Shown here in pieces: positions 33,577-59,242 of a stretch of DNA of 64,000 bases; position 1 is the stretch's first letter, and the number at the start of each line of letters is the position of its first letter. A program made the translations under genes and the position numbers. The notes beneath the pieces are model-generated. The model did not search any database, had not been told where the DNA came from, and saw nothing but the letters and a program-made list of their open reading frames with translations. Source of the stretch: Macrostomum hystrix (Eukaryota; Animalia; Platyhelminthes); assembly GCA_950097015.1 (NCBI GenBank), contig CATNEN010000024.1, positions 5,704,001 to 5,768,000 of the forward strand, given 5' to 3'.

Positions 33577-35322
33577 TTAACATCCAGCAGCGCTTTCGCA
33601 TCCATCTGGAAGTAGGCGACAGACATAGAACACAAGATAGTCGGCCTCATCGTCTGTGATGGCGCAGTCCTCTCCGGCGATGATTTGATTGTCGGTCATG
33701 ACTGGCAGATACAGTGCCGTTGGCCACCCGGGTTGTATAGCGAATATGTCGGCCCAGTCGCACTCAGCGCGGGCTACCAAAGCAGATGAGATGATTTGGG
33801 GAGAATGCCATGAGCCGCCTAGTGCGGCTGCTACAGTGCGCCAGGCTAATTTGCGGCAGGCGCCGCGTGGCCGGGTGCGCAGAAACGCGGCCAGCAAGGC
33901 GCGCCAAACACTGTCGGGCAGATCGACTCGCTGCGGCTTCTGCGGAATCGAAACATTTTCCTGTTTCAAATTATTCATTAGCCCTGGCGGTGTTTTCTGT
34001 TCGGACTGTCGTTGTTGTTGTTGTTGCTGCTGCTGCTGCTGCTGCGGTGGCTGCTTCTGTTGCGACTGTCTCTCAATGAAGCAGTCCTGCGTAGCTTTGT
34101 TCAAAGCCGAGCTCAGGTTTCGTGCTCGAGCTGAAGCGATGCGTGAAGAAACAAATTATATGAGTCGAAGGTCCCTGTCTAGTAACGGTTCGATAACGGA
34201 GAGATAGCGCACGGCTTTTGAGTGCAGCAACGCTTAGGAGACGAGTGCGTGAAGCGCACTTGCACACTGTCTATGGTAAATCTTGGCACTATTTTGTCTC
34301 AGCTAGTGTCCAAACCATTCTTCAGTGCTTTTTCACTCCATCTCTCGAAAATTAATCATCGTATCGCATTGACATAATCCACCTCACCGACGTCTAGACT
34401 TCGCGATAAAAGGCACTACTGGCACATCATCTGGTGACACAAGACCCGCACCGAGCGAGAAGCAATTCTGGCCATTCCGCTGACTCCTGACCACATAGGC
34501 ACACATACTTACGAAGGCATACACTCACACAGGTGTGGACATCTGCCCTGACTTTCTAATTGTACACTCACTGTTCCTTAGGCAGCTAAAGTTGCACCAT
34601 TAAGCCCGAATGAAAGTGGCTTCGTCGCGGATTCGAGCTCCGCAGTGCGAAAGATCGTCAACTCATGCTACTCAACCCCAGAAGAATTTTAGTTACCTAA
34701 TTAAAACGAATAAACAGACTAAGTCGACATGGAACTTACCAACACCTTCAATAGCAGTCTCCCTCTTCTGGGTAGTAGAGCTAGAGCTATTATGATAGCT
34801 GCTAACTTGACCACCAGACAATCTCGGAGGCCTAGCTGCTGGGGTGAACCTACTACTAGTACTAGTACTAACAGCAGTATTAGACAGACTTCTTTGGTTT
34901 TTACGAATTGGTGGTCCCCTGTAGCCAGTGCCGCTGCCGATGGCTCGGTGATCATTATAAGCGCCAATTGGAACAGCGTCCATTAGCACGTGCGATCGCC
35001 TGTTGGCACGGCTGACGTAGGCTATGCTACGACTATTATTCAAATCGCCGCTGCTTAGCCTCTGATTCTTGATTAGGCTCTCAATGTGGCTGGTATTGGC
35101 GTTCGACAGGCCGTGAACTAGGCATCCGCCGGCCGATAGGCGCACAGTGTCCCGCATGTCGTTGAGCATATCCGACAGGCTGGCATAGCCGTAAAGCTCA
35201 TAGTCTAGCGGCTTGCCAGACAATTTTTTAAACTCATTGGGCAGCTGGTGCAATGGAATAGTGCCGCTCTTCGTTGATAAGAGGGTTGCTCGCAGGTTAA
35301 TTTTTAAATCTTCGAACTCCAT
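33577..35322 (-). CDS. LOTUS (OST-HTH) domain protein, TDRD5/TDRD7-like N-terminus, 2 exons, about 378 aa
   Basis: Exons 35322-34740 and 34130-33577 (1137 nt, phase-1 intron). The N-terminus LRATLLSTKSGTIPLHQLPNEFKKLSGKPLDYELYGYASLSDML...NTSHIESLIKNQR matches the extended LOTUS pattern. A poly-Q linker and a second degenerate LOTUS-like segment follow. Confidence 0.85.
34491..34680 (-). mobile_element. Diverged SINE family A-related copy in the LOTUS-gene intron
   Basis: CACAGGTGTGGACATCTGCCCTGACTTTCT and TCGCGGATTCGAGCTC match the reverse complement of family A. Confidence 0.65.
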
Positions 35323-38482: not shown

Positions 38483-38710
38483 ATATTTTAAAGTGAACAT
38501 TTTTTCCTTACATTCTTAGCATAAAAAGTGATCTAGTAAGGCTATGCGTCTAAGAGATACAATTAATTTGTTCCTAACTTTTTCCAAGGAGACTGGCATT
38601 ACATTTGGGACAAAGTGTATATTCAAGAGAGTAAGGCTGTTCTTATAAAAACAATGGCGTCAATAAATGATACTCTTACTAGACGGAGCATAACACTATA
38701 AATTGGATTT

Positions 38711-41700
38711 TTAATTGCATAGATCCTCCAGTATCTCGGCAGCCAACTCATCGCTGTCGTCTGTCGGCAGGGGGCGCTCTTGTCTGGCTCTCTTGGCAGG
38801 CGGCTGACCAGCTGTGAGTGGCCTGGGAGCAACCACCAGCAAGAGGTTGCACTCTTTGCTCGATAGAATCATTGCTTGATCATCCGGCATGTGTTCGTCT
38901 TCATCGATGTCGGCATCGCTTAAGCCGACTGCGGCGGTAGCGGCGGCTACATTAGCGGCATCTCGGCGATTAAAATGTTTTTGGACAATGAAGAAGGCGG
39001 CAATGCGCTCGTCGCGACAGATTCTTTGCACATCTTCGAGGCAAGGCGGCTTGAATTTGATCAGCTTCTGCGTTGGTTTGGTTTTGTTAGATTTTGTTAG
39101 ATTTTATTAATATCTACGAGGGGTGTTTAACAAGTCTTTGGACTTTTCATTCAACATTTTTTAACAGCCAGCAATAGTAACAGCAACTTTTTTATTTTAT
39201 AGCGGCTTACTTACAAATTACTGTGTAATTATTTTTCAAAATATCACCGACAGTGGGGTACAGCATCTCAATAGATGATTGAAGCAGGAAGTAAACAACA
39301 ATTTTGAAAAATCTTGGAAATCTGCCAATTTAAACTTGTGTGAAAAATCAATAATCAAGGACAACTAGAAAAAGAAGGACAGGACACTTCGACACTTCGT
39401 GAAAAGTTCCTATCTCACTAGTAGTGCATTTTTGCGTGAAAATCGGCCTTTAATAAATTTCCCAAGAACCGAAGTGTCCTGTCCTTCTTTTTCTAGTGGT
39501 CCTTGGTGATAATGTGTGCCAAGTCATAACTCATATCTATGGTACTAATGTACGAGTTTGCTCCTGCTTGTGGGGCACTCTGAAAAAGCCACAGAAAGAG
39601 ACTCATTTTGAGACGCATAGCAAGCCGAATCCTTTGTTGCCAAGTGTTGGTCAGAATTTCTTCCTAATCTGTGGATTTTAATGGCCGTAAACTAAAATAC
39701 AGCACAGCATTGCTCGGCCTGTACCCTCTGGCATTAGGTTGAATGGTGCTGAAATTTCGACACAGCTGAGCACAATTCATGGGCCTGAAGCAGTATCTAG
39801 AATTCATGCCAACCGTGAGCGATAGGTTCTTGTGCACGAAATGCCAAGGCAGGCATATGCAGATGCCATTAACAACATGCCTACCTGGTGGAAAGAATGC
39901 ATTAAACTGACTTTGTTGAGAAGGTCTCAGTTGCCATTTGAACTATTTTGAAAGACAACTGACCTACTGTTTCCTGGTACTCTATATGCAGCCTCCAATT
40001 TCCTGTTCGTGTATTGAGATGCTGTACTAATATAAGAATTACCATGGAAAGAATCCAATTTAACTTACAGAGACTGCAGACTTCACCTGGCACTTGATAT
40101 CGACATCGCTAATTCTTATAAGCACATTGACTGATTCGTTTTTTTCTGAAATAGAAGATCAAATAATTATTTTCGTTTGTGCGTTGTTTCATTGTATTGT
40201 TAAGTCTTTAACACCCTCTCTGCCTGCAGACACCGAGTCACAAAACAATATTCCGATCGATATGGCAGTCAATCAATATAATAAGCCAGACTCACTGACA
40301 GGATCATTGAGCTCAACCCAAACGGACTCCGTACTCAAGCCGGAATCGTCTGACCAAAGAATCGTGCGCGGGTTGAACTCGACAATTTTAAGGCTGCTCT
40401 GAGATGAGCTCACTGCGGCTGCAAACGGAAACAGTGCAAAGCAATTCAAATTATACATTTTATTAATTCCTACGTAATTCCTTCACCCCACCAAGTTTTC
40501 TGTTCGAATTATTTTTCTAGCAGCTACAATAAATGATTCTGATGATTGCTGACACGTAACTCACAAGCGATAGAATCGGTATCTCTGTGCACAGTCGCAG
40601 CATTGTCAAGCAATGGCAGCGGAGGGCCCTCCGGTGGTTCTTGTTTCAATAGGCACAGCTTGAATCTGATGCGAACTGAGCTGTCAATCTTCTTCATGTC
40701 AGACTGGGACAGTTCCGTCAGCAGACGGTCTTGGTGAGTTAGGACAGTTTGATTCTTGTTTTATTAAATATGAACTGAGCTTATTATAAACGACAGGATG
40801 AGAAAGGGTGTGAGACAGGGCGAGTAGGGTGCCAGACACGGAGAATTAGGGTGTGAGACAGGGCGAGAAGGGTGCCAGACAAGGAGAGAAGGGTGTGAGA
40901 CAGGGCGAGAAGGGTGCCAGACAGGGAGAGAAGGGTGTGAGACAGGGCGAGAAGGGTGCCAGACAGGGAGAGAAGGGTGTGAGACAGGGCGAGAAGGGTG
41001 CCAGACAGGGAGAATAAGGCTGTGAGACAGGGCGAGAAGGGTGCCAGACACGGAGAATTAGGGTGTGAGACAGGGCGAGAAGGGTGCCAGACAAGGAGAG
41101 AAGGGTGTGAGAAAGGGAGAATAAGGCTGTGAGACAGGGCGAGAAGGGTGTCAGACAGGGAGAGAAGGGTGCCAGACAAGGAGAGAAGGGTGTGAGAAAG
41201 GGAGAATAAGGCTGTGAGACAGGGCGAGAAGGGTGCCAGACAGGGAGGGAAGTGTGTGAGACAGAGAGAGAAGGGTACCAGACGGGGAGAGAAATGTGTG
41301 TGTGACACGGACAAGGATGCTGGGTTGAGACAGAGTCATGCCCAAGAAGTTTTGAGATTTGAGCACTACACAGATTGAGACTTCAACACTGACTCAGATA
41401 AATCAACACGATGGCTATACCGATATGTGTATATTCGATAGGTAACCACAAAGTTAGATAATTTAGATGAGCTTATAAGTATATTAAAGCTATATGATGC
41501 AGGATTGTTAGAAAGGCATGTCTGTTGTCAGACTGCGCCAAAAGCTTTTTAACACTCTTAAATTATTTGTGGAAAACGTCTCTAAGAATTGCCAAATACT
41601 CGTAGTTATCGCCAAATATAAGGAATAAGTTAAAGCTTACCAAAGTATGACTGATGCCAATGCATTCTGCGTGAGCTGTCTAATCGATTTCGAATGGCCT

Positions 41701-44700
41701 CCTTAATATCGTCCTTCTTGTATTTCATTATACAGTGCTTGTCCAGCCTGAATAGTGTAAATATGAAAATCAGAAAATTGGTAATTGCTTTGAGGCAGCT
41801 GCAGTTTGACTGACATCCCATGTCAACGGAAAATAGGGTAATCACGCTCACTTAAGTGGAATCAATTAAGTAGAAAAGACAAGTAGGAAAATATATATTG
41901 GCTGGGATACTCGATTGACAGGCTACCAAAAGAAATTAAAGACAATTTCTGAGGTTCAGTTATAAACTCCGTTAAAAGATTTTGATTAAGTAATTCATCT
42001 CTTTTGACTTCACACTTTTGATTTATTCAGTCCAGAATTGGACCAACTGACAACCACTAGGCCTTTTCGATCTACAGGTAACTCATACGACTTAAGACTA
42101 AAATAAAAATATATTTTTTCGTGCACATAGCGAATACGAGTGGAAATACGACATGAGAGAATACGGTGGAATGATCAAAGCACTCAGAAAATGCTTTGTA
42201 CAGTAAACACTATATAAAGATTCTAAAAAAGTGTCATCTCAACTCCTATTGGCTGATAAAAGCTTAACAACCAAGAGACGGAGAGCGGTAGCCAGCAATT
42301 TCCCTAGCAATTATAAACACCAGTATTGTCAGCTGCCACAATCATCCAGTTCTATTCCAGCATTGCAAGCAATGCTACACAGGTTCATACTGCTGCCCAT
42401 TGTGGCACTGCTAGCTAGCGCTAGTCGCATTGTATTCAACCGTCTGCCAGACGGATTCTGCGCCACCGTGGCTCCGGGCTCCCAGCCAAACGCTACTTAT
42501 CGCAGCGTGACGCCGATTGCGTCGCAGGAAGCGTGCGCAGTCGAGTGCGCCAGCTCGGAGGCGTGCGCCGCCTACCAGCTGAGCAATGGCGGCCAGTGCC
42601 TGCTAGGCTCGGCCTGCGATCTGCGCCAGCGCTGGCAGCAGCTGACGCCTGGTGGCACAGCCTGCATAGCAACGTACTTCAACAAGGACCGAAACAGTAG
42701 CTGGGCCGGCTGCCAGAGCCTACTGGAGGCTGTCTATGAGAACGGTAAGCGAATTTTACTCTGTTCTTGCGCATGCGCAAGCGCATCCTAGTTGTCTTAT
42801 ACGTTGTTTCTACGGCAGGTATAAAATAGGTAGCAGCATTAGCTGAGGTAGCAGAAGTTAACGTTGGTCTGGCGGCCCTGTCTCACTCCGAGTCTTTATA
42901 CTTGGACTACAATTGTAAAACTAGGACGCATTTCCATTATGCGTCCTTAGGACTCTAATACTTGGCACTTCTTTGAAGACATGTCACTGTACTAGCAATC
43001 CAACTTATCACGCAATTTTTCTCTTCACGACTTTCACAGACGGGACGCCGAGCAATACGGATACGCCGAAGTACTACAAGCCAGTGATTGGCTCAGGCTG
43101 TTACCGCATCCGGGCCTGGGGAGCGCAGGGCGGCAACCAGCTCACGTCAGCTGGGGGCAGCGTTCTAACACGAGGCGGCCTTGGCGCTTACAAAGAGGCC
43201 GCATTCATCCTTAACGAGGCCGATAATCTCACGATCATTGTTGGCCGGCGCGGAAACGACAGTATCACGACTAGCCAGGGCGGAGGCGGCGGCGGAGGCA
43301 GCTTTGTGTACAAGTTCAACCCAGGTGGTGCGAGAATTCTTCTGCTAGCGGCTGGTGGAGGCGGAGGTGCGGCTCAACTAACTAACGGCGGCAATGGAAC
43401 TGACATCGAGAACGGCGGCCAATCCATGCTGGATACCAGCGGTGGCATTGTTGGCTACGGCGGCGTTGCCGGCAACGGGGCGCCGGCGCCTACAATCGTG
43501 ACAAATCAGCGAGGACTGGGCGGTGGCGGAGCCGGCTGGCTCACGGACGGCTGGAGTTGTCCCGACAATGACGGAGGCAAAGGCGGAGACTCGACAACGT
43601 GGCTTGGCGGCGTCGGAAAAAATTGCAACGGCGGCTACGGCGGAGGCGGCGGCGGAGGCAACGTGCACGGAAGCGGCATCAATACCGGGGGAGGCGGCGG
43701 CGGCGGCGGCTACAGCGGCGGCGGAGTGGACGGCGACAGGTCACGCGGCGGAGGCGGCGGCGGCAGCTACGCGGAGCCAAGCCTGTCTAGGGGAGCGCGT
43801 GGCGGCGTCGGTGGAGCGCCGGGACCGGGAGGGCTCGTGAAAATCGAAGTCATTGGAACGGTGAATCACACCGCCTGCACTGGATGGTGAGCAGTCTTTG
43901 AGTCCGACGAACAAGCAGAAGTAACTAAGTACCCAAAAGATACTTTTGAATTGTCACAATTGAACGACTAGTGAACGCCATCAATAGCAATATATTTTTG
44001 CAGTAGGAGCAGCAGCAGCAGTAGTAACAGATAAATAACTGATTCAACACGGATTTGATAATAAACAACAAAGAACTATACAAGTAGCCAAGTTTTGCAT
44101 ATACATTCTTTGTCACTAATTTTCAAATGTTATGCCGCGAAAAATGATTTTTACTACTCGACCTATTTTATCTCTTTCGTCAAGGGCTGCCAACTCGTAG
44201 ACACACGTAACAAATTCAATCTCGCAACCTAAAAATGCAAATTATGATGTCCAAATATGTCTATTAATCAGGTTTGTATTATAATACTAACTATTTGAGG
44301 TTGTAATCCATTAATTAGACCTTCAGACTTTCTCTCAGCCCAAGGAAAACAATTTGTGCAATTAAGCAAGACACTTAATTAACCATTGCTCAGTTCACTA
44401 AAATTTGAATAGGTGTGGCGGCCACCAGTCCACGGACTGAACACAAGTCTTTAGAAGCTCAACGCAATAGCTCCGGCTTTATCACTTATCATTAAAAAAA
44501 TTACCAAACAGCGCCCCTGACGAAATGAGTTTCTGTTGGATATCCGTTGCCATAAACGTGCGAGTACTAACTAAATGTTTACGAGTATGTTTGCAGCCAT
44601 TTTTAGATATGCAATAAATTTTACCAGCGTAGACAATTTTAAATCCTTTGTTGATACACACCACATAGCGATACTACAATAATGACACAAGTCTATTTTC

Positions 44701-47700
44701 TATTGAAACTTTCAATGCTATTCAATATGAGACACTGTTATGCTCTTATTCTACAACATTATTTCAACCTTGGATATACACTAGAAGCGGTGAAATGGAC
44801 GCATGTTATAATAAAGCGTCCACAAAAAAGAGAAATTTTATTGCCGCGTCTAGCAAACGCTATAATCAGATTGTTGCTTTGAATTATTTTGTAAAACGGT
44901 CTCAGAGAGAAAGTCTGGTCTGATCCGCATTTTGGCTTGGTCATAACTAGCGCTTTCCAGTTGCCATGCGGAAGACAATGAAATAAATATAAAAATTTCT
45001 ACATTTTATTCCGCAGAGCGGTGTGCCTGTAGGCAGGAAGGAATGAAAAACTGGCACCCAAAAGAACTGGCCAAATCCGCCTTTTCTTGGCATACGCAAA
45101 GTCCTATAGCAAGGATTTATGAATTATTGATTTGGAGATGAGGAGACAGGTGGCACAATAGCCGCATTAAAAGCATAGAGGACAGCAATTAAAATTTTTT
45201 GCTGGAATGGACTTGATTCAGGCAGTGGAAATTTTCTTCAGGTCGATTCTATTCTCTCAAGGTCACTGAGGTACACCGCCTCAAGACAGCATCCAATGGC
45301 ATGTTGAATCAAGTTTAACACTAAGTTGAAGTCTTATGTCGACTTTCATGGTCACGGCGGAAGTAGATTTTTACATGATTACTGTGAAAGTAGATTTTCT
45401 CATCGTCACAGTGAATGTAAATTATCTCATGGTCACTGTAAATCTAAAGTCCCTTAATGTCACTCTGAATGTTGATTCTCCTATGGTCACTGCGAATGTA
45501 AATTCTCTCAAAGTCAATGAGGATAGTGATTCACTCAAGGTCAATGAGGATAGTGATTCATCAATGTGGATAGTGATTCACACAAACTCAATGTGGATAG
45601 TGATTCACTCAAGCTCAATGAGGATAGTGATTCATCAATGTGGATAGTGATTCACTCAAGCTCAATGTGGATAGTGATTCACTCAAGGTCAATGTGGATA
45701 GTGATTCATCAATGTGGATAGTGATTCACTCAAGCTCAATGGGGATAGTGATTCATCAATGTGGATAGTGATTCACTCAAGCTCAATGAGGATAGTGATT
45801 CATCAATGTGGATAGTGATTCACTCAAGCTCAATGAGGATAGTGATTCACTCAAGCTCAATGAGGATAGTGATTCACTCAAGCTCAATGAGGATAGTGAT
45901 TCATCAATGTGGATAGTGATTCACTCAAGCTCAATGTGGATAGTGATTCACTCAAGCTCAATGAGGATAGTGATTCTTCAATGTGGATAGTGATTCACTC
46001 AAGCTCAATGTGGATAGTGATTCACTCAAGCTCAATGAGGATAGTGATTCATCAATGTGGATAGTGATTCACTCAAGCTCAATGAGGATAGTGATTCACT
46101 CAAGCTCAATGAGGATAGTGATTCACTCAAGCTCAATGAGGATAGTGATTCACTCAAGCTCAATGAGGATAGTGATTCACTCAAGCTCAATGAGGATAGT
46201 GATTCACTCAAGCTCAATGAGGATAGTGATTCATCAATGTGGATAGTGATTCACTCAAGCTCAATGAGGATAGTGATTCATCAATGAGGATAGTGATTCA
46301 CTCAAGCTCAATGTGGATAGTGATTCACTCAAGCTCAATGAGGATAGTGATTCATCAATGTGGATAGTGATTCACTCAAGCTCAATGAGGATAGTGATTC
46401 ACTCAAGCTCAATGAGGATAGTGATTCATCAATGTGGATAGTGATTCACTCAAGCTCAATGAGGATAGTGATTCACTCAAGCTCAATGAGGATAGTGATT
46501 CACTCAAGCTCAATGAGGATAGTGATTCATCAATGAGGATAGTGATTCACTCAAGCTCAATGGGGATAGTGATTCATCAATGTGGATAGTGATTCACTCA
46601 AGCTCAATGAGGATAGTGATTCATCAATGAGGATAGTGATTCACTCAAGCTCAATGTGGATAGTGATTCATCAATGTGGATAGTGATTCACTCAAGCTCA
46701 ATGAGGATAGTGATTCATCAATGTGGATAGTGATTCACTCAAGCTCAATGAGGATAGTGATTCACTCAAGCTCAATGAGGATAGTGATTCACTCAAGCTC
46801 AATGTGGATAGTGATTCACTCAAGCTCAATGAGGATAGTGATTCACTCAAGCTCAATGAGGATAGTGATTCACTCAAGCTCAATGAGGATAGTGATTCAC
46901 TCAAGCTCAATGAGGATAGTGATTCACTCAAGCTCAATGAGGATAGTGATTCACTCAAGCTCAATGAGGATAGTGATTCACTCAAGGTCAATGTGGATAG
47001 TGATTCACTCAAGCTCAATGAGGATAGTGATTCACTCAAGCTCAATGAGGATAGTGATTCATCAATGTGGATAGTGATTTATCAATGTGGAAAGTGCTTC
47101 ATCAATGTGGATAGTGATTCATCAATGTGGATAGTGATTCATCAATGTGGATAGTGATTCACTCAAGGTCAATGTGGATAGTGATTCACTCAAGGTCACT
47201 GTCGATAGTGATTCCCTCAAGGTCAATGTGGATAGTGATTCACTCAAGGTCAATGAGGATAGTGATTCACTCAAGGTCAAAATGGACAGTGATTCACTCA
47301 AGGTCAATGTGGATAGTGATTCCCTCAAGGTCACTGTGGATAGTGATTCCCTCAAGGTCACTGTGGATAGTGATTCATTAATGTATATAGTGATTCACTC
47401 AAGGTCACTGTGGATAGTGATTCATCAATGTATATAGTGATTCCCTCAAGGTCACTGTGGATAGTGATTCATCAATGTATATAGTGATTCCCTCAAGGTC
47501 ACTGTGGATAGTGATTCATCAATGTATATAGTGATTCACTCAAGGTCACTGAGGCGAATTCTCAATTTGAAGGTCGCAGTACAAAGGAAGCTCGCTGAGC
47601 TCACTGGCTTGTAAATGCAGTATCACTAGGGTACGCTTTCTTCGCAGTAAGTATTGATGCTGGCTTAAAATTGCTCATTGATTTCTATTATTTTTGTGAA

Positions 47701-48788
47701 TGTATTTCGAAGAAAATATACCAGATAGTCAAAACAAACAGGAAGCAGAAAATTTAAATGAAAATGAAGCAGAAAAAATTGCACTCACAAAAGCCAATTA
47801 GTGAAGAAAGAATCTAGAAATCATCAAAAATTCATAGACAGCTGAATGGGCCCCTAGCAAAAGCGAGTAAGAAAAGGCGTAGGCACTCATACTTGTCAGG
47901 CTCCTCCATAGCAACCAATACTCTAGTAATTTATAGATCCACAATATTTGAATGTTTTTATAGCATGAAAATTAGGCGACACATAAGCATACTCACTACA
48001 AAAAACAATCGTTTATTAGCCCAAAAATTCTCTGAAGAGAATGGCTGAGATCAGCTGACTGATGAGAATGGCTGAGATCAGCTGACTGATGAGAATGGCT
48101 GAGATCAGCTGACTGATGAGAATGGCTGAGATCAGCTGACTGATGAGAATGGCTGAGATCAGCTGACTGATGAGAATGGCTGAGATCAGCTGACTGATGA
48201 GAATGGCTGAGATCAGCTGACTGATGAGAATGGCTGAGATCAGCTGACTGATGAGAATGGCTGAGATCAGCTGACTGATGAGAATGGCTGAGATCAGCTG
48301 ACTGATGAGAATGGCTGAGATCAGCTGACTCAAGAGAGGCTCAGCCACCTCGGGAGTCGTGTTAAGTGTACGAGAACAGCTATACCCGTTAGCTAGCTGT
48401 ATGAATTTGCGCATAAAATGATCCCCAATAAGACTCACTTGAACACCAACGGCTCAGGGCTTAACTGGCAGGGATGGTACAGGAAGCCGGCATGGCATCC
48501 TTCGCCAATAAGTTCGAACGCGTGCAGTTGCTCAGGCTGGCCAACTCGCACCAGATAGGCAAAGAGAGCGGCCTGCACGGGTTGGCTGGCAGTGAGTTGC
48601 AGTGTGACCCGACTGTTCTTATCAGCCGGCCGGCCGTACAACTGGCTGCCGATAGCTTTGGGCCCAATTGAGGCTCGGAAGGTGGTCACTTCGCGATGGT
48701 AGCGAAAGCGACTACTGGTTGCCGGCTGGCAGGTAATGCGCAGGCTGAGCCGCGGCTCCGCTGCGTCATCCCCTGCTGCTGCCGCGGC
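38711..48788 (-). CDS. Divergent Rel-homology (NF-kB-like) transcription factor: RHD + IPT + NLS-like tail, 9 exons, about 503-504 aa
   Basis: Exons 48788-48439, 41747-41641, 40729-40565, 40418-40296, 40145-40069, 40021-39964, 39884-39725, 39668-39554, 39067-38711; all GT-AG, phases consistent, 1512 nt. Motifs: LRITCQPATSSRFRYHRE, LHAFELIGEGC, KKDDIKEAIRNRL, IDSSVRIRFKL, SSLKIVEFNP, ELNDPVKKNESVNV, GRHVVNGICICLP, PPAKRARQE. The start and the boundaries of exons 7-8 are less certain. Confidence 0.8.
39356..39505. mobile_element. 150-bp MITE with about 36-bp terminal inverted repeats in the last intron of the Rel-like gene
   Basis: CAAGGACAACTAGAAAAAGAAGGACAGGACACTTCG versus the right-end reverse complement CAAGGACCACTAGAAAAAGAAGGACAGGACACTTCG: 1 mismatch. 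Confidence 0.85.
40800..41320. repeat. Degenerate 21/42-nt repeat (GTGTGAGACAGGGCGAGAAGG / GTGCCAGACAGGGAGAGAAGG)
   Basis: Alternating units, in intron 2 of the Rel-like gene. Confidence 0.88.
42211..42218 (+). promoter_or_regulatory. TATA box of the nested glycine-rich gene
   Basis: TATATAAA about 160 nt upstream of ATG 42372. Confidence 0.45.
42372..43890 (+). CDS. Secreted PAN/apple-like + ALK/LTK-type glycine-rich domain protein, 2 exons, about 407 aa; nested antisense in intron 1 of the Rel-like gene
   Basis: Exons 42372-42744 and 43040-43890 (1224 nt, phase 1). Signal peptide MLHRFILLPIVALLASAS, then C..EC....C.AY......C (PAN/apple-like), then YRIRAWGAQGG...GGLGAY...F.L...LTIIVG...GGGGGGSFV...LLLAAGGGGG. 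Confidence 0.85.
45500..47550. repeat. 27-nt minisatellite (GATAGTGATTCACTCAAGCTCAATGAG)n interspersed with a 20-nt deletion variant
   Basis: Direct copies; degenerate precursor-like copies at about 45330-45500. Confidence 0.96.
48035..48330. repeat. 27-nt minisatellite (GAGAATGGCTGAGATCAGCTGACTGAT)n, about 11 copies
   Basis: Perfect direct copies. Confidence 0.96.
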
Positions 48789-48909
48789 CTACCAAGTGGC
48801 GGAGGAATGACGGTGTGATCTGGCTTGCGGCGAAGCGAAATATACTCATCCTAACATTAACAGATATGAGATCTCAGTCTAATTCTGATCCGAAATTTCC
48901 CTCATTTCA

Positions 48910-49865
48910 GATCCCTAACTTAAACATCCTGATCCTGAACTCAAAGGTCCTGATCTCTAACTCAAACATCCTGATCCCTAACTTAAACATCTTGATCCCT
49001 AACTGAGACATCCTGATCCTAAACTCAAACATCCTGATCCTAAACTCAAACATCCTGATCCTGAACTCAAACATCCTGATCCCAACCTGAGACATCCAGA
49101 TCCTGAACTCCAACATCCTGATCTCAAACTGAGACATCCTGATCCTGAACTCAAACATCCTGATCCCTAACTCAAACATCCTGATCCTTATCTCAAACAT
49201 CCGGATCCCTAACTTAAACATCCTGATCCCTAACTTAAACATCCTGATCCTGAACTCAAACATCCTGATCCCTATCTCAAACATCCTGATCCCTAGCTCA
49301 AACATGCTGATCCCTAGATCAAACATCCTGATACCGAACTCAAACATCCTGATCCCGAACTCAAACATCCGGATCCCTAACTTAAACATCCTGATCCCTA
49401 ACTTAAACATCCTGATCCCTAACTTAAACATCCTGATCCCGAACTCAAACATCCTGATCCTGAACTCAAACATCCTGATACCTAGCTCAAACATCCTGAT
49501 CCCTAGTTCAAACATCCTGATACTGAACTCAAACATCCTGATCCCGAACTCAAACATCCTGATACCTAGCTCAAACATGCTGATCCCTAGCTCAAACATC
49601 CTGATCCCGAACTCAAACATCCTGATACCTAGCTCAAACATGCTGATCCCTAGCTCAAACATCCTGATCCCTATCTCAAACATCCTGATACCTAGCTCAA
49701 ACATGCTGATCCCTAGCTCAAACATCCTGATCCTGAACTCAAACGTCCTGATCCTTAGCTCAAACATCCTGATCCCGAACTCAAACATCCTGATACCTAG
49801 CTCAAACATCCTGATTCCGAACTCAAACATCCTAAACCCGAACTCAAACATCCTGATCCTGAACA
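48910..49865. repeat. 21-nt minisatellite (CTCAAACATCCTGATCCCGAA)n
   Basis: About 45 variant copies between VPS36 and the Rel-like gene. Confidence 0.95.
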
Positions 49866-50539
49866 AGAAATAGTAATTCGATATATATTCTTACATATTC
49901 TCACGCGTATCTTCCTATTATTAGTAGGTAGTCACACATATCTCATGTGTGTGCGTGTTAAGAGTTGTTTAGAATCGAAAACAAACAAAAAATTCCAATA
50001 TTAACAATAAATTAAACGCATTGAAGCAAGTTTCTAAGCTAAAAAGTTCAAGCTTTCATCTCACTCGAACGACACTCTGCCTCAGTAGTAGCACATTCAA
50101 ATGATGTTTACGAGACATCACTCGTACACTTTGCTCTCGAAGACTATAGTCGGGAATAGAGACTTGCACTAAAGAGGCCTAAAAAACCACCTATGTTAGA
50201 TTAAAAACACAAATAACACACTCGACAAATATGCACGGATATTTATATTACAAACAAAGTCCACAAAAGGATTTTATTATATTTTCCTATGCACAAACGT
50301 CTATTGGTTTCTTTCGCATGAAGAGACATAATCACTAGAATCAAAAACTGACACGATGAACAGAGCGCTATCACAATTAAATAAAAATATTGTACGGGGG
50401 TTGCATTTGAGACCAACCAATCCTCAATTCAGATATTCTGGTCACTTTAGCACCAGAACAAGAACGAACAAAGTAACTCAGATCTTGAACTGAAATATCT
50501 GACAGATCCGATTTTAGATATTCCGTACCCAAGTTAAAA

Positions 50540-50770: not shown

Positions 50771-50884
50771 TTCGGATCCATTAAACTTAATTATCTAATA
50801 TCGGTCCCGAAACGGTTTATTATGATCATAAATCCTAACAATTATTTTCGCATTATTTCCTAACAGCAGGAAAGCTAAAACAAC

Positions 50885-51797
50885 TCATTTTGCAATCTCC
50901 TCGATGGGAAAAGTGTCAAACAAGTTGGGATAAAAGGCCAGGCCCTCGACGGCATCGTCGCGGCAGGTGAGGCCGGCTGCTTCGGTCAGGAGCAGGCGCT
51001 CCCTGGCCAGAGTGACGGACAGGCCGGCAGCTCTCGACAGCTCCTGGGCGGTTAGGTGGCCGCGCTGTCTGACAGCTTCGGCTGCCGATTCCAGCGCCGC
51101 CTGCTGGTTGTGACTGGCCAGCTGCAGCACCATCACGCCGCTATCGAAGGTGTGCAACCTGACGGCCAAGTTTAATTGTTGCATAGCGCCGGCCGCGGCA
51201 ACCAGATCCTCCGGAGAGATTAGGTCGAGGCCGCGGGCTCGATTGTACAGGCAGTAGGCGTCGGTTAGGGTCATCACCCCGCCGCGCTCACGCAGCGGTT
51301 GTTCCAGGAAGTCGCTCAACTAGCAGAATGGAGATTTCGGGGATACAGTAATCTATTGCAGGCATGAATAAGAGTAATCTATAACAGAAAAGAGACTGGA
51401 GAGAGAGTAATACATAAAACAGAGTGAGGAGTAATCTTCTATAGTAGACAGGATTGAGAGTAAACGATTGAACAGGGTGAGACAGTAAGAGTTTACAGAT
51501 CTGTCTTCAAAGACACGGTGGGACAGCAATATAATAGGGACAGGGGTATATATGAGAGTATAGATTACGGGCAGTGGTATAGATGAGAGTAATAGATTAC
51601 GGACAGGGATATATGAGAGTATAGATTACGGGCAGTGGTATAGATGAGAGTAATATATTACCGACAGGGGTACAATAATAATAATTGCAGGAGGGCTGCG
51701 GGCAGTGGCACATCATTTTAGTGACACTAGACCCGTTACTTCGGTCTAGTTACATAAGCCAGCGAGCAGGCAATTCTGCCCATTTCGCTGACACCTG

Positions 51798-51849
<52 letters not shown>

Positions 51850-53478
51850 TACTGTACGCAGGCATACGCTCACACGTGTGTACATCTGCACTGACTTTCT
51901 CATCGTCAGGCAGTGTACATTTTACTGTGCCTTGGAGACTGGCCCTCAAGGGCGTAAATTGCACGACAAGCCCTCAAGCCTTCTCTCCGCGGCTGCGCCC
52001 CAAATAAATGTGGCCTCGCCGTGGAATCGAACTTAGGGACCGTGGTGCGAGAGGCTAACGCGATAACCGCTCTGCCACCGAACCCCTACGGACAGGAGTA
52101 TGAGAGTAATCAATTGGTAGAAGCGGAGGCAGTGGTAAAAATTCATTTCAGAATCCACGATATCAAACCTGTTTAGCTAGACTATTGAAATAGTGCGAGC
52201 CGCCGCCGTATTGCTCTCTAGTGATGGGATCACTGACACCCATGGCCAGCAGGTGCTGCTTAAGTTGGGCGGCTTCGTCCTCAGGCGGCGCCTTGTCGCG
52301 CATTCGTTGGGCCACGCCGCGAGTCATAGCGACCATGGGTTCGGCTAGGCGCATTAGAGCATCGAGATCGTCGAACGCCTCGGCGATGTTCCGGTCGGCT
52401 GAGCGACGCTGCTCCGCCATGCGCCGCTCAATGCCGCCGATGCCGAAGTGGCGCTGAGAGGCGGCGGCCGGGGCCTGCTTAACCCACGCCCGACTGCGCA
52501 GCGCCTCCTCCATAGCGGCCAGGAATTCAATGTCACCCGCCTGACGGAAGGCTAGCCGTATGTTGTCCAGCTCGGATTTCATCATCGGGCCGCCCTGTAC
52601 GTCAGAAATCAAGTTAAACTTTTACTGGCTGTAGGGAGACCTGAAGAACCCTGAGGAATTCAGTGACAAACAACAAAAGGAAACCCTGAGGAAGAGGATA
52701 CCAGGGACTCAGATTCCCTAAAGAAGATGGTATCAGGGGAAACCGGGGGTCGGTAAAATTTTTAGCTAGCGGGCCAAAGAGAGAACCTAAAAGACGACAG
52801 CGGGTCGCATTAACTATAGAAATATGAGATAGTGGAGAGATGAGACACAAAAGAGATGAGACACGGGAGATACGAGACACTGGATAGATAATCAATTTGA
52901 TACGGGAGACACTGGAGAGACGAGACAGCGGAGAGATGAGAACGGGAAAGATGAGACTGTAGGTGTTGGAAGGGGCAACAGGCCGGATTTGGGAACTTCG
53001 AGGGTCGCAACTGGCCCGCGGGCCGGAGTTTGCCAACCCCTGCTCTAGAGGGAACCCTGAGGAAGAGGGTATGAGGGGAAACTTTATAAAGATATGCTCG
53101 TACACTGCTAGAAATAAACTGAGGTGCGGTTATCTGTTGCTTTTTAATCTTGGAATCTTGCAACTCAGATAAAACATATCAGACACACACCTGGCGCCAG
53201 CACTGATCGGATGGATCCTTGGTGTGAAAATGCACAGCCAACTTTGCCGATTTAAACAATCCACCAGACTCCGAGCGCACCCGTTTTACGTCCTTCAAAT
53301 TGAAGGCGATGACGTCCGCCTTGTCGCGCCAAAGCACCCGGTGGGTGGTGAGTATCAGGCGGCCGGAATCGAATGCCGACAACCGTGTCTCGCCATCGTA
53401 CAATCCAACGCCGTCCTGCTGCAGAATGAGCGACTCGGATTCGCCAAGATCCGAGCTGGACCAATAGAATCTGTTCAT
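50885..53478 (-). CDS. VPS36: ESCRT-II subunit VPS36 (GLUE domain + winged helices), 3 exons, about 382 aa
   Basis: Exons 53478-53191, 52594-52169, 51319-50885 (1149 nt, phase 0/0). Motifs: MNRFYW, GVGLYDG...FDSGRLILTTHRVLW, GIGGIERR, AFDDLDALM..AEPMV, LTDAYCLYNRARGLDLISPEDL, CRDDAVEGLAFYPNLF. Confidence 0.96.
51752..52088 (-). mobile_element. SINE family A, full-length copy with an expanded internal (TG)n, in VPS36 intron 2
   Basis: Reverse complement GGTGGCAGAGCGGTTATCG...AAGTTCGATTCC head plus family-A body; (CA)n at about 51800-51846. Confidence 0.88.
52744..53042. mobile_element. hAT/Charlie-like non-autonomous element in VPS36 intron 1
   Basis: Ends are CGGGGGTCGGTAAA and (reverse complement) CAGGGGTTGGCAAACTCCGGCCCGCGGGCC. 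The right flank CTCTAGAG fits the NTCTAGAN target; the left TSD is not recognisable. Confidence 0.65.
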
Positions 53479-57469: not shown

Positions 57470-59242
57470 ATGGGCAATGACCAGAGCTTCCCAGAAGGTG
57501 TTGCCAATTCGAATGGTGCAACCGGAGCCACGGACGCTACGCCGAGCGCGCCGAGTACGCCTCGACCGATACTGCGAAATCCAGCCGGCGGCAGTCAACT
57601 GAGCGATGAGAAGAATCGGCGCAGCGTGGTATTTCGTGACCAGACAGAGGACGCGCTGCGCTCAAACCGTTCCATTGTGCGCAGCAGTGGCGGTGGCGAG
57701 TCACGCGCCCAGTTCGCAGCGGGCGGCAGCGGCTTGACTCGCCTGTCGGAGCAGGTGAACGATCTGAACGGCGGAATGAGGCGACAGGCGTTCGTTGAGG
57801 CACATCAGGCGAACGGTCACGTGAGGCGTCCTGCTCGGGTGCAGAAACCCCCAGCGCCAGCCCCGCCACCTGCAACAGTGATGCAGAAGCAGCAGACAAG
57901 CGACAGACCGGATGATTCAGCGCCGCCAGTAGACGATAGCAGAGTGTCTCGAATGCGAGAATACGTCTTCGCATTGGCAGAGAAGAGGGGGAAGAGAGGC
58001 AAAGATGATTCAGAGTCTAGCGGGGGTCGGCTATATGATCCCAGCCAGGAGCTGCCGACTGTCACCGAAGAGAAAGAAGAGCGAGACGACTCAGCGCGGA
58101 GTGGCCTATTAAAAGCGGACTCAAACGAAGCTCTCAGGGAAGAAGTTAAGCAGGAAATCATTCGAGACTTGTTGAGCAATCCGTCCTCGCCATCGGAACG
58201 GCCACAGGAGCAGCAGCAAGCGAATCATACGGAGGTAGACTCGTCAAGCAGTTCGAAAAAGATGAGCGATGCTGAGAAAAATCTGCTTATCTCCGAGATT
58301 CGGCAACAGCTACTGGGCCAGCAGCCGGCTCCAGCCCAAAGAGACTACTCAGACGGGAGTATACCTGAGCCAGACTACTCCGAGGATGAGCTCTCATCAG
58401 GACCCGAGGCGACGCGTCCTCTGCCAAGATTCGCTTCTCAGCTGGAGATGCAGACAGTCGGGTTGGGCAACGGGCACTACCGAAGTCCGCTGCAGCCCAG
58501 GCGCTTCAAGGGTCCCGCACCAGCGCCGCCGAACGCACGGTACAGGCGAAGCGGTGGGCCACCTGTTGTTCGCGAACCCTACCAGGCCCAGTGGGAGGAG
58601 CCGATCTACGCCTACGACGGGCCGCAGAGCGCTGAGCAGAAGCTGCAGGAGCAGATGGAGAAGGCGTACGATGATCGCTACAGGCAGAAGAGTAGGTCGA
58701 AGAGTAGGTTCGGCGACAGTTGGAAGCGCATGACAGCCAGTCTGAGCAAGGCGTTCGGCCTCGGCAGCAGCGGCGCCGGAGGAGCCGCAGCCGGCGGCGG
58801 CGGCGCGAAGTCAGGTGTGGTGCGCCGCTCCTCTGTCCGCGATAGCACATTTGAGCGACCAACCGACCAGAGAAGTCTTCAGCAATCGCAGCTCAGCTTC
58901 AACGGCAGTCGGTCAGGCAGCGTCTACAGTCTGGCCAGCGCGGAGATGCCCCCGACTGAATCACAACACCAACTTCCTCAGCAGCATCATCGAGCCGCAC
59001 TACCAGTTAACATCTGGCGCGACGTGGCGCAGGCGAATCACGACCAGATGCTGCACACAAGCAACCCCGTGTTCGGCTATAGCCAGGCTCCCTACGAGAC
59101 TGCGCCTATCGATCGAACTATCGACAACGGGAGCGGCAACTCAGAGTCGACCTGGGCGTCCAGGTCGCCAATAGCCCGAATCACAGTGCCGCCATCGAAT
59201 GCGAACCGGGTGAACTCAAAGGGCGAACAAACTTACCTGTAG
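57470..59242 (+). CDS. 590-aa largely disordered protein, putative membrane-anchored signalling adaptor; apparently intronless
   Basis: Uninterrupted non-repetitive ORF with exon-like GC content. Motifs: MGNDQS (myristoylation consensus), Pro-rich PAPAPPP, IPEPDY, EPIYA, C-terminal QTYL. Confidence 0.8.
   Translation: MGNDQSFPEGVANSNGATGATDATPSAPSTPRPILRNPAGGSQLSDEKNRRSVVFRDQTEDALRSNRSIVRSSGGGESRAQFAAGGSGLTRLSEQVNDLNGGMRRQAFVEAHQANGHVRRPARVQKPPAPAPPPATVMQKQQTSDRPDDSAPPVDDSRVSRMREYVFALAEKRGKRGKDDSESSGGRLYDPSQELPTVTEEKEERDDSARSGLLKADSNEALREEVKQEIIRDLLSNPSSPSERPQEQQQANHTEVDSSSSSKKMSDAEKNLLISEIRQQLLGQQPAPAQRDYSDGSIPEPDYSEDELSSGPEATRPLPRFASQLEMQTVGLGNGHYRSPLQPRRFKGPAPAPPNARYRRSGGPPVVREPYQAQWEEPIYAYDGPQSAEQKLQEQMEKAYDDRYRQKSRSKSRFGDSWKRMTASLSKAFGLGSSGAGGAAAGGGGAKSGVVRRSSVRDSTFERPTDQRSLQQSQLSFNGSRSGSVYSLASAEMPPTESQHQLPQQHHRAALPVNIWRDVAQANHDQMLHTSNPVFGYSQAPYETAPIDRTIDNGSGNSESTWASRSPIARITVPPSNANRVNSKGEQTYL

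Follow-up and report, generated by a model that had tools for sequence, protein, structure and literature searches.

The base contacts made by the recognition loop R-x-R-Y-x-x-E are known from the structures of p65 and p50, and the residues which fill this loop differ between the families, R-F-R-Y being the Rel/NF-kB form and RAHY or RARY the form of NFAT and NFAT5. In NFAT, 4 residues separate the conserved Pro from the first Arg of the loop.

Surveys of the Platyhelminthes list no NF-kB family proteins (PMC11432056). Nevertheless, seven highly divergent RHD transcription factors and a conserved NFAT5 were reported from Schmidtea in 2026 (PMC13563047), which shows that flatworms retain RHD proteins despite the surveys without NF-kB (PMC13563047, PMC11432056). 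These planarian genes combine low NF-kB similarity with long branches, and knockdown of the best NF-kB-like RHD gene was rapidly lethal and left transgene expression unaltered (PMC13563047).

Here, we describe a minus-strand gene with six exons from a Macrostomum-type flatworm, located in a window of 64 kb (the whole stretch of DNA that was analysed), whose recognition loop is probably of the Rel/NF-kB type, a reading to which we assign a probability of roughly 0.7. The gene is real, transcribed, spliced, conserved and under purifying selection. Judged from its sequence, the encoded protein resembles a Rel/NF-kB-type DNA-binding factor that has diverged strongly. The exon structure was taken from spliced RNA contigs, which in all four runs resolve six exons on the minus strand separated by GT..AG introns, and all splice acceptors and donors of the six-exon ORF are canonical. 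The features are the following:

48789..48790, minus strand: AG acceptor directly before exon A, probable spliced-leader trans-splice site
48439..48788, minus strand: exon A, 350 nt, aa 1-116 plus 2 nt; the putative RHD DNA-binding domain begins here
48690..48710, minus strand: recognition-loop codons R27-F-R-Y-H-R-E33 (RFRYHRE), from the translation
41748..48438, minus strand: intron 1, 6.7 kb, GTGAGT...CAG
41641..41747, minus strand: exon B, 107 nt, LDKHCIMKYKKDDIKEAIRNRL..., counterpart of a 20-residue stretch of c-Rel; RNA joint 40729/41641 in four runs
40565..40729, minus strand: exon C, 165 nt, SSVRIRFKL motif and Pro-rich linker; joints 40729/41641 and 40418/40565 in four runs
40296..40418, minus strand: exon D, 123 nt, Ser-rich linker, then SLKIVEFNP...WVELNDPV (start of the putative IPT/dimerisation domain); RNA joints
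40069..40145, minus strand: exon E, 77 nt, KKNESVNVLIRISDVDIKCQVKSAVS; joints 40145/40296 and 39067/40069 in four runs
38711..39067, minus strand: coding part of the last exon, aa 275-392 plus stop, KLIKFKPP...DERIAAFFIVQK
38783..38794, minus strand: codons of the NLS-like basic motif K366-R-A-R369, from the translation

The four contig joints (41641/40729, 40565/40418, 40296/40145 and 40069/39067) are present in four runs at a depth of 15-24. Every sampled word of exon A occurs in 4/4 RNA runs, and the direct junction of exon A to exon B was deduced from the length of the RNA contig and a 5-nt overhang match. The spliced ORF comprises 392 codons without an internal stop, encodes 392 aa and closes with a stop codon at 38713-38711; the 3' UTR runs past 38650 to roughly 38374, one contig (run X2) spanning 38650-39067 and 276 nt more. 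Within intron 1 lie long tandem repeats and another gene, nested on the plus strand. Checking the exon junctions against RNA, as proposed in the first-pass annotation, thus established a spliced and expressed gene with a different number of junctions: the nine-exon model suggested there had to be given up in favor of six exons, the end of exon E at 40069 joining 39067 directly. Further exon candidates in the segment 39.5-39.95 kb (among them FKWQ...FFPP) were rejected together with that model, because the main transcript skips 39068-40068, a segment represented only by low-depth unspliced RNA pieces (depth 2-5 vs 15-24).

The start of the gene is unusual in that the frame of exon A is already open at the first base and includes no ATG, while an in-frame TAG at 48791-48789 shuts the reading frame upstream. 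The first exon of the M. lignano ortholog likewise begins at an acceptor (ttgcag, followed by exonic GCG) and is devoid of an in-frame ATG. RNA contigs of all four runs extend ~24 nt past the acceptor of exon A and then end, which we infer to match the expectation, in a k=31 assembly graph, for a leader that numerous mRNAs have in common. The spliced leader of M. lignano has the 3' end ...TTGCATG (PMC8629364), and donation of the AUG by the leader has been described for the genus Macrostomum (PMC10468722); the 35-nt leader of M. lignano is absent from the 64-kb window at up to 3 mismatches. Since exon A follows an AG acceptor and holds no in-frame ATG, a Macrostomum spliced leader with ATG at its end probably supplies the start codon. 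The mRNA would accordingly be trans-spliced, the terminal AUG of the leader serving as initiator Met in phase 0.

The positional orthologue in M. lignano, BOX15_Mlig030977g2 (P0001; UniProt model P0003, in which it is fused with the downstream LOTUS gene), is annotated as 'hypothetical protein, partial' and carries no annotated Pfam domain. In either species the gene is flanked by Vps36 on the upstream side and by a LOTUS-domain gene on the downstream side, which together with the ortholog identifies the host as a Macrostomum-like flatworm. The ortholog has six exons in the same phases as the window gene, 4/6 exons being identical in size (107, 165, 77 nt and equivalent phases), and differs in its length of 371 aa vs 392 aa and in a shorter spacer ahead of the conserved ECNLLLV. 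The window protein is 52% identical to P0001 over 363 aa, as compared with 91% for the neighboring Vps36 exon, and exon A shares 63% identity with exon 1 of M. lignano; dN/dS between the two species is 0.28, with synonymous change saturated. Residues invariant in both species include R-F-R-Y-x-x-E, KYKK and VRIRF.

In about 1.8 and 5.8 billion proteins, no relative other than this M. lignano gene was found, the queries being the orthologue P0001 and single exons, which stood in for the spliced window protein. With exon A, phmmer against 1.84 billion representatives returned only the M. lignano orthologue and one repeat protein and zero canonical RHD proteins, and word-indexed searches, run with P0001 as well as the family profile, returned two M. 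lignano models only; none of these searches reached a planarian protein. The idea that the gene had been missed in flatworms is weakened by the divergent RHD genes already reported from Schmidtea (PMC13563047). Its M. lignano ortholog is indeed annotated as 'hypothetical' only, without a Pfam domain. Since seven such genes were described in 2026, the Macrostomum gene joins an already known kind.

The resemblance to Rel proteins is most evident in the N-terminal domain. The sole Pfam family to match is RHD_DNA_bind (PF00554), with E 1e-3 on exon A (residues 16-112 vs profile 1-87/169), E 7e-4 on P0001 (residues 14-138 vs profile 1-114) and E 1e-3 on P0003, such that the M. lignano ortholog carries the weak match as well. 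The first 140 residues align in the correct register, and the score of 19.5-20.1 bits in both species lies below the curated cut-off of 27. The RHD-like N-terminal domain proposed from the letters alone was thereby recovered at a sub-threshold level. When the family profile was compared with 177,635 PDB sequences, ranks 1-11 were all c-Rel or p65, with individual E of 0.1-1.5 and collinear alignments (query 78-143 vs chain 56-119) that include the exon B stretch, and no NFAT chain was among the matches; exon A alone gave chance-level matches in PDB, with no RHD. In ESM-Atlas, the language-model features of the whole protein, for which P0001 was used as a stand-in, scored up to 0.92 (197 shared features), and the ten best family-bearing matches were all RHD. 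The nearest clusters are unnamed rotifer and mollusc proteins, 14-30% of whose members carry RHD_DNA_bind, and an NFAT5-like cluster (0.88) ranks above RelB (0.86); exon A alone gave no useful match there (top score 0.46). Taken together, the resemblance to Rel exceeds chance, yet stays under curated thresholds.

All motifs listed in the first-pass annotation were found on the minus strand within RNA-supported exons. Exon A encodes CQPATSSRFRYHRE and LHAFELIGEGC, exon B encodes KKDDIKEAIRNRL and exon C encodes VRIRFKL; LKIV...ELNDPVKK straddles the junction of exons D and E, which falls between ELNDPV and KK, and the last exon also encodes ECNLLLV, the basic PPAKRARQ and the acidic tail. The NLS-like motif is partly conserved in M. 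lignano (PPKQARLRR). Within the loop, R, R, Y and E are retained in both species, in keeping with the base-contacting pattern R-x-R-Y-x-x-E. The redox-sensitive Cys position of RxRYxCEG is filled by Arg in the window protein (RFRYHRE) and by Gly in M. lignano (RFRYVGE), which bears out the reported replacement of this Cys, and the Gly of the same motif is absent, the residue after Glu being Val in both. The spacing of 4 residues from Pro to the first loop Arg and the lack of ankyrin repeats also held, Pfam detecting no ankyrin in the protein and no domain other than RHD_DNA_bind in exon A and P0001.

The closest described proteins by PDB sequence matching are the vertebrate class II Rel factors c-Rel and RelA/p65 (PDB 1GJI, 1NFI, 1VKX). 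The window protein shares with them the collinear stretch LV..(x)..H.hELvGkDC..G..(26-28 aa)..KK.DlkeaI..R and the R-F-R-Y-x-x-E loop; like them, it is free of an ankyrin domain and combines a basic motif with an acidic C-terminus. However, the identity does not suffice for ordinary significance, the loop lacks its Cys and the next Gly and is followed by ~10 additional residues, the basic motif is placed ~60 aa past the putative IPT domain instead of at its end, and the protein measures merely 392 aa in total. NFAT and NFAT5 belong to the same superfamily, and the NFAT5-like cluster is close in feature score (0.88); in contrast to NFAT, the window protein has no N-terminal regulatory (calcineurin-docking) region, its RHD match starting at residue 14-16, and its loop reads RFRY and not RAHY or RARY.

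For the C-terminal half, the evidence is of two kinds. No Pfam match to RHD_dimer/TIG (PF16179, PF01833) was obtained in the protein, and the C-terminal profile met no RHD or IPT chain in PDB, only chance-level matches. Language-model features of residues 200-371 alone, on the other hand, placed RHD_dimer clusters on top (0.90, 185 shared features). The dimerisation half that had been proposed is thus supported by these features only, and not by HMM or PDB sequence matches. AlphaFold2 gave an unusable model for P0001 (pLDDT 32, 6-row alignment) and a pLDDT of 42 for the C-terminal domain, for which Foldseek returned PilZ, resolvases and other chance-level matches. As both models failed, the RHD fold is a putative one; this output is uninformative and does not count against an RHD fold.

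Several other explanations have to be weighed against this background. The missing in-frame ATG in exon A and the TAG directly upstream might suggest a decaying pseudogene or a non-coding transcript, a reading that becomes practically negligible in view of the stop-free spliced ORF of 392 codons, the dN/dS of 0.28 at saturated synonymous change, the identical ATG-less, acceptor-first layout in M. lignano and the leader-donated AUG known in the genus (PMC10468722). It is also very improbable, though less so, that the RHD resemblance is coincidental and that the gene encodes a Macrostomum-specific protein of some other, unknown fold. Such a coincidence would agree with HMM evidence wholly below curated thresholds, with structure predictions that gave no confirmation and with two very large searches that returned no homologue outside Macrostomum. 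Nevertheless, the Pfam HMM, the family profile against PDB and the language-model features converge on one family in the correct N-to-C register, the C-terminal half independently points to RHD_dimer by its features, and the residues invariant between species include the RFRY..E loop, KYKK and VRIRF.

More weight, while still unlikely, is given to a protein of the RHD superfamily that is no NF-kB/Rel orthologue and belongs to a lineage-specific, fast-evolving class, akin to the long-branch planarian RHD genes or to the unnamed rotifer and mollusc clusters, with a specificity and biology unrelated to kB sites or immunity. The nearest language-model clusters, with their 14-30% RHD_DNA_bind and the NFAT5-like score of 0.88 above the 0.86 of RelB, fit such a class, as do the fast evolution (52% identity vs 91% for the Vps36 exon), the Cys and Gly missing from the loop and the seven long-branch RHD factors of Schmidtea (PMC13563047). 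Against it stand the PDB sequence matches, all c-Rel or p65 and zero NFAT, and the lack of a long NFAT-like N-terminal regulatory region, the RHD beginning at about residue 14. Moreover, the R-F-R-Y loop has the Rel/NF-kB form and not RAHY or RARY.

Under the preferred reading of a divergent factor with a Rel/NF-kB-type loop, the protein would enter the nucleus via its basic PPAKRAR motif, dimerise through an Ig-like IPT domain at about aa 215-305 and read kB-like DNA by R27, R29, Y30 and E33 together with K127/K128 and the VRIRF arginine, and its acidic, hydrophobic C-terminal tail may activate transcription. As the loop Cys is absent, such a factor would not be subject to the redox control that acts on NF-kB, and as there is no ankyrin domain, inhibition, if any, would have to come from a separate protein. 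A stronger claim, that macrostomid flatworms keep a true Rel/NF-kB orthologue which is ankyrin-less and Cys-less, takes its AUG from the leader, binds kB-like sites and serves in immunity, stress or regeneration, is tentative and open to considerable doubt. If it were true, the reported absence of NF-kB from the Platyhelminthes would reflect extreme divergence and not loss.

The gene also illustrates how a start codon that is probably donated by the leader, together with fast evolution, can leave a putative transcription factor under the label 'hypothetical, partial'. The planarian background consists only of long-branch RHD genes whose role is unclear (PMC13563047), and in Macrostomum the gene described here provides a concrete RHD candidate that is both expressed and conserved. 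It could serve to test the binding of kB sites by flatworm RHD proteins and their roles in immunity or regeneration, and it could show how RHD regulation proceeds without the loop Cys or an ankyrin domain.

The putative Rel-homology (RHD) gene, which lies on the minus strand of a eukaryotic region, was reconstructed from four publicly available runs of the source organism, whose run type is unrecorded and which were taken as RNA since their contigs are spliced. Its first exon, exon A, is fully present in all four. When run contigs were aligned to window positions 38650-44649 (6 kb), each run yielded one contig (1177-1540 nt, depth 15-24), and these carry four identical minus-strand joints, all GT..AG. 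A further 374 nt of contig are left 5' of the true exon B start, equal to exon A (350 nt) plus ~24 nt, and the exon A-B junction and the 5' end of the transcript are based on this contig arithmetic; at 41748-41752, five more bases align by chance, prolonging the end of exon A with one mismatch. From the joints and this arithmetic, the transcript therefore has six exons, with canonical splice sites throughout and a spliced ORF of 392 codons ending in a stop at 38713-38711.

Features of the locus and its surroundings
48788-48439, 41747-41641, 40729-40565, 40418-40296, 40145-40069 and 39067 downwards, minus strand: RHD gene exons, from RNA contigs
41641 / 40729, minus strand: RNA joint, 911 nt skipped, four runs
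40565 / 40418, minus strand: RNA joint, 146 nt skipped, four runs
40296 / 40145, minus strand: RNA joint, 150 nt skipped, four runs
40069 / 39067, minus strand: RNA joint, 1001 nt skipped, four runs
50867-53478 and 35017-35322, minus strand: flanking Vps36/EAP30 (ESCRT-II) and LOTUS/OST-HTH genes, kept at the M. lignano locus
42231-43890, plus strand: nested opposite-strand gene inside intron 1
45300-47600, 48020-48340, 40780-41340 and 48900-49870: four long arrays of tandem repeats, lying within introns 1 and 2 or immediately 5' of exon A
57470-59242, plus strand: uninterrupted Ser/Pro/Gln-rich ORF of 590 aa

The first-pass annotation had proposed nine exons, a count that the RNA junctions reduce to six: 39068-40068 (1 kb) is an intron with low-depth unspliced coverage only. 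The landmark motifs it had named were nevertheless all recovered by three-frame translation, and all lie within real exons. Unspliced RNA pieces at 39565-39876 in this last intron (depth 2-5, no joints reported) may come from intron retention or from a weak transcript that is unrelated. At 40635, three of the four runs carry C for T, a synonymous polymorphism (coding strand CCA to CCG, Pro184, exon C). The nested gene contains a 186-aa ORF with a weak PAN-like Cys-rich domain (E ~0.01-0.03) and a 305-aa Gly-rich ORF matching the Pfam ALK/LTK glycine-rich domain (E 1.4e-6, 28.9 bits vs threshold 24.5), its RNA contig coverage coming chiefly from run X4; many loose-ended contigs at 43.3-43.8 kb suggest that the Gly-rich family exists in multiple copies. 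The repeat arrays give rise to spurious long ORFs on both strands (such as DSDSLKLNE, SQLISAILI and IRMFE(F/L)G units).

Exon A directly follows an AG (48790-48789) that is part of an in-frame TAG, no in-frame ATG occurs within exon A, and the sole nearby ATG opens an out-of-frame ORF of 29 codons. In M. lignano, the first exon likewise begins with GCG after ttgcag, with the ORF open from base one. Trans-splicing affects 30% of genes in M. lignano, where the spliced leader ends in ...TTGCATG (PMC8629364), and 10-20% in M. cliftonense and M. hystrix; the final ATG of the Macrostomum leader likely serves as translation start (PMC10468722). In both species, a leader AUG is in phase with GCC GCG GCA. 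The RNA contigs of the four runs all end at one shared point ~24 nt upstream of the acceptor, which fits a leader common to thousands of mRNAs breaking the k=31 graph. The leader would thus be joined at the exon A acceptor, and its AUG is the probable start codon.

When 1.84 billion cluster representatives were searched exhaustively by phmmer with exon A, a single true relative was returned, P0001 (E 2.7e-33). This Macrostomum lignano entry, recorded as 'hypothetical protein BOX15_Mlig030977g2, partial', lacks a precomputed Pfam domain and is encoded on NIVC01001699.1. The M. lignano exons, rebuilt to translate exactly into P0001, measure 347/107/165/126/77/294 nt vs 350/107/165/123/77/357 in the window, with identical phases. 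Across 363 aligned residues the proteins share 52% identity, and dN/dS is 0.28 at a dS of ~1.5 (Nei-Gojobori). In both species, Vps36/EAP30 is the same-strand upstream neighbour (last exon 91% identical) and the LOTUS/OST-HTH gene lies downstream (67% identical). These comparisons place the window in a macrostomid flatworm that is a relative of M. lignano yet distinct from it. The two genes are positional orthologues under purifying selection, and the RHD gene evolves much faster than its neighbours. Vps36/EAP30 lies ~2.1 kb upstream of the RHD trans-splice acceptor, and an operon of the two is a possibility; P0003, the UniProt model of the M. lignano gene, fuses it to the LOTUS gene.

Searches used single exons of the window gene and P0001 as queries, and the whole spliced window protein was analysed in scripts. 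RHD_DNA_bind was the sole Pfam family reported, for exon A (E 1e-3, 19.5 bits; residues 16-112, profile 1-87), P0001 (E 7e-4, 20.1 bits; residues 14-138, profile 1-114) and P0003 (E 1e-3), with all scores obtained lower than the gathering score of 27. A family profile run against 177,635 PDB sequences filled ranks 1-11 with c-Rel (1GJI, at E 0.097) and ten entries for p65, with family LV..H.FELIG.DC..GF...KK.DIK.A..NR collinear with c-Rel/p65 LVTK..H.H.LVGKDCRDGY...[13 protein letters not shown]. In the ESM-Atlas feature search, P0001 matched RHD-bearing clusters (best score 0.92, 197/256 features in common), RHD being common to all ten best family-carrying matches. Residues 200-371 alone, without the Pfam-matched part, ranked RHD_dimer clusters first (0.90, 185 features in common). 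P0001 gave no Pfam RHD_dimer or TIG match, RHD was absent among the PDB matches of the C-terminal profile and of exon A alone, and phmmer with exon A reached no canonical RHD protein among the 1.84 billion representatives. Two AlphaFold2 models had a pLDDT of only 32 and 42 because only two species were available for the alignment, and Foldseek with the latter gave noise-level matches. We put genuine RHD homology at roughly 90%, and the two-domain architecture somewhat lower.

Both species share S-R-F-R-Y, a Glu three residues on, GPKAIGS, DKNSRVTLQL, LDKHCIMKYKK, SVRIRF, KDERIAA and ECNLLLV. By the p65, p50 and c-Rel structures, several of these motifs would correspond to DNA contacts: R-x-R-Y-x-x-E to residues that read bases, the KK pair to a backbone contact and the VR(L/I) Arg to a further contact with DNA. 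Such a pattern suggests that sequence-specific DNA binding is retained. The Cys of RxRYxCE, already noted as replaced, is Arg in the window gene and Gly in M. lignano, the next Gly being Val in both, and the redox switch is therefore absent; the protein also lacks ankyrin repeats, as had been noted. A basic motif (PPAKRARQ, in M. lignano PPKQARLRR) could act as a nuclear-localisation signal, and the acidic, hydrophobic C-terminal tail as an activation domain.

The protein may belong to either of two classes. A Rel/NF-kB orthologue is favoured by the RFRY loop and by PDB matches to c-Rel/p65 only; a lineage-specific RHD class is favoured by fast evolution and by proximity in the ESM-Atlas to unnamed rotifer and mollusc clusters, which precede NFAT5-like (0.88) and RelB (0.86) ones. 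For Platyhelminthes and Nematoda alike, a 2024 survey found no member of the NF-kB family (PMC11432056). In Schmidtea, seven RHD transcription factors are reported by a planarian study of 2026, in which knocking down the best NF-kB-like gene killed rapidly and left transgene expression unaffected (PMC13563047); flatworms are thus already known to carry divergent RHD genes. The proposal of a Rel-family regulator missed in flatworms is weakened by this record, which does not include the Macrostomum gene, annotated only as 'hypothetical', without a domain.
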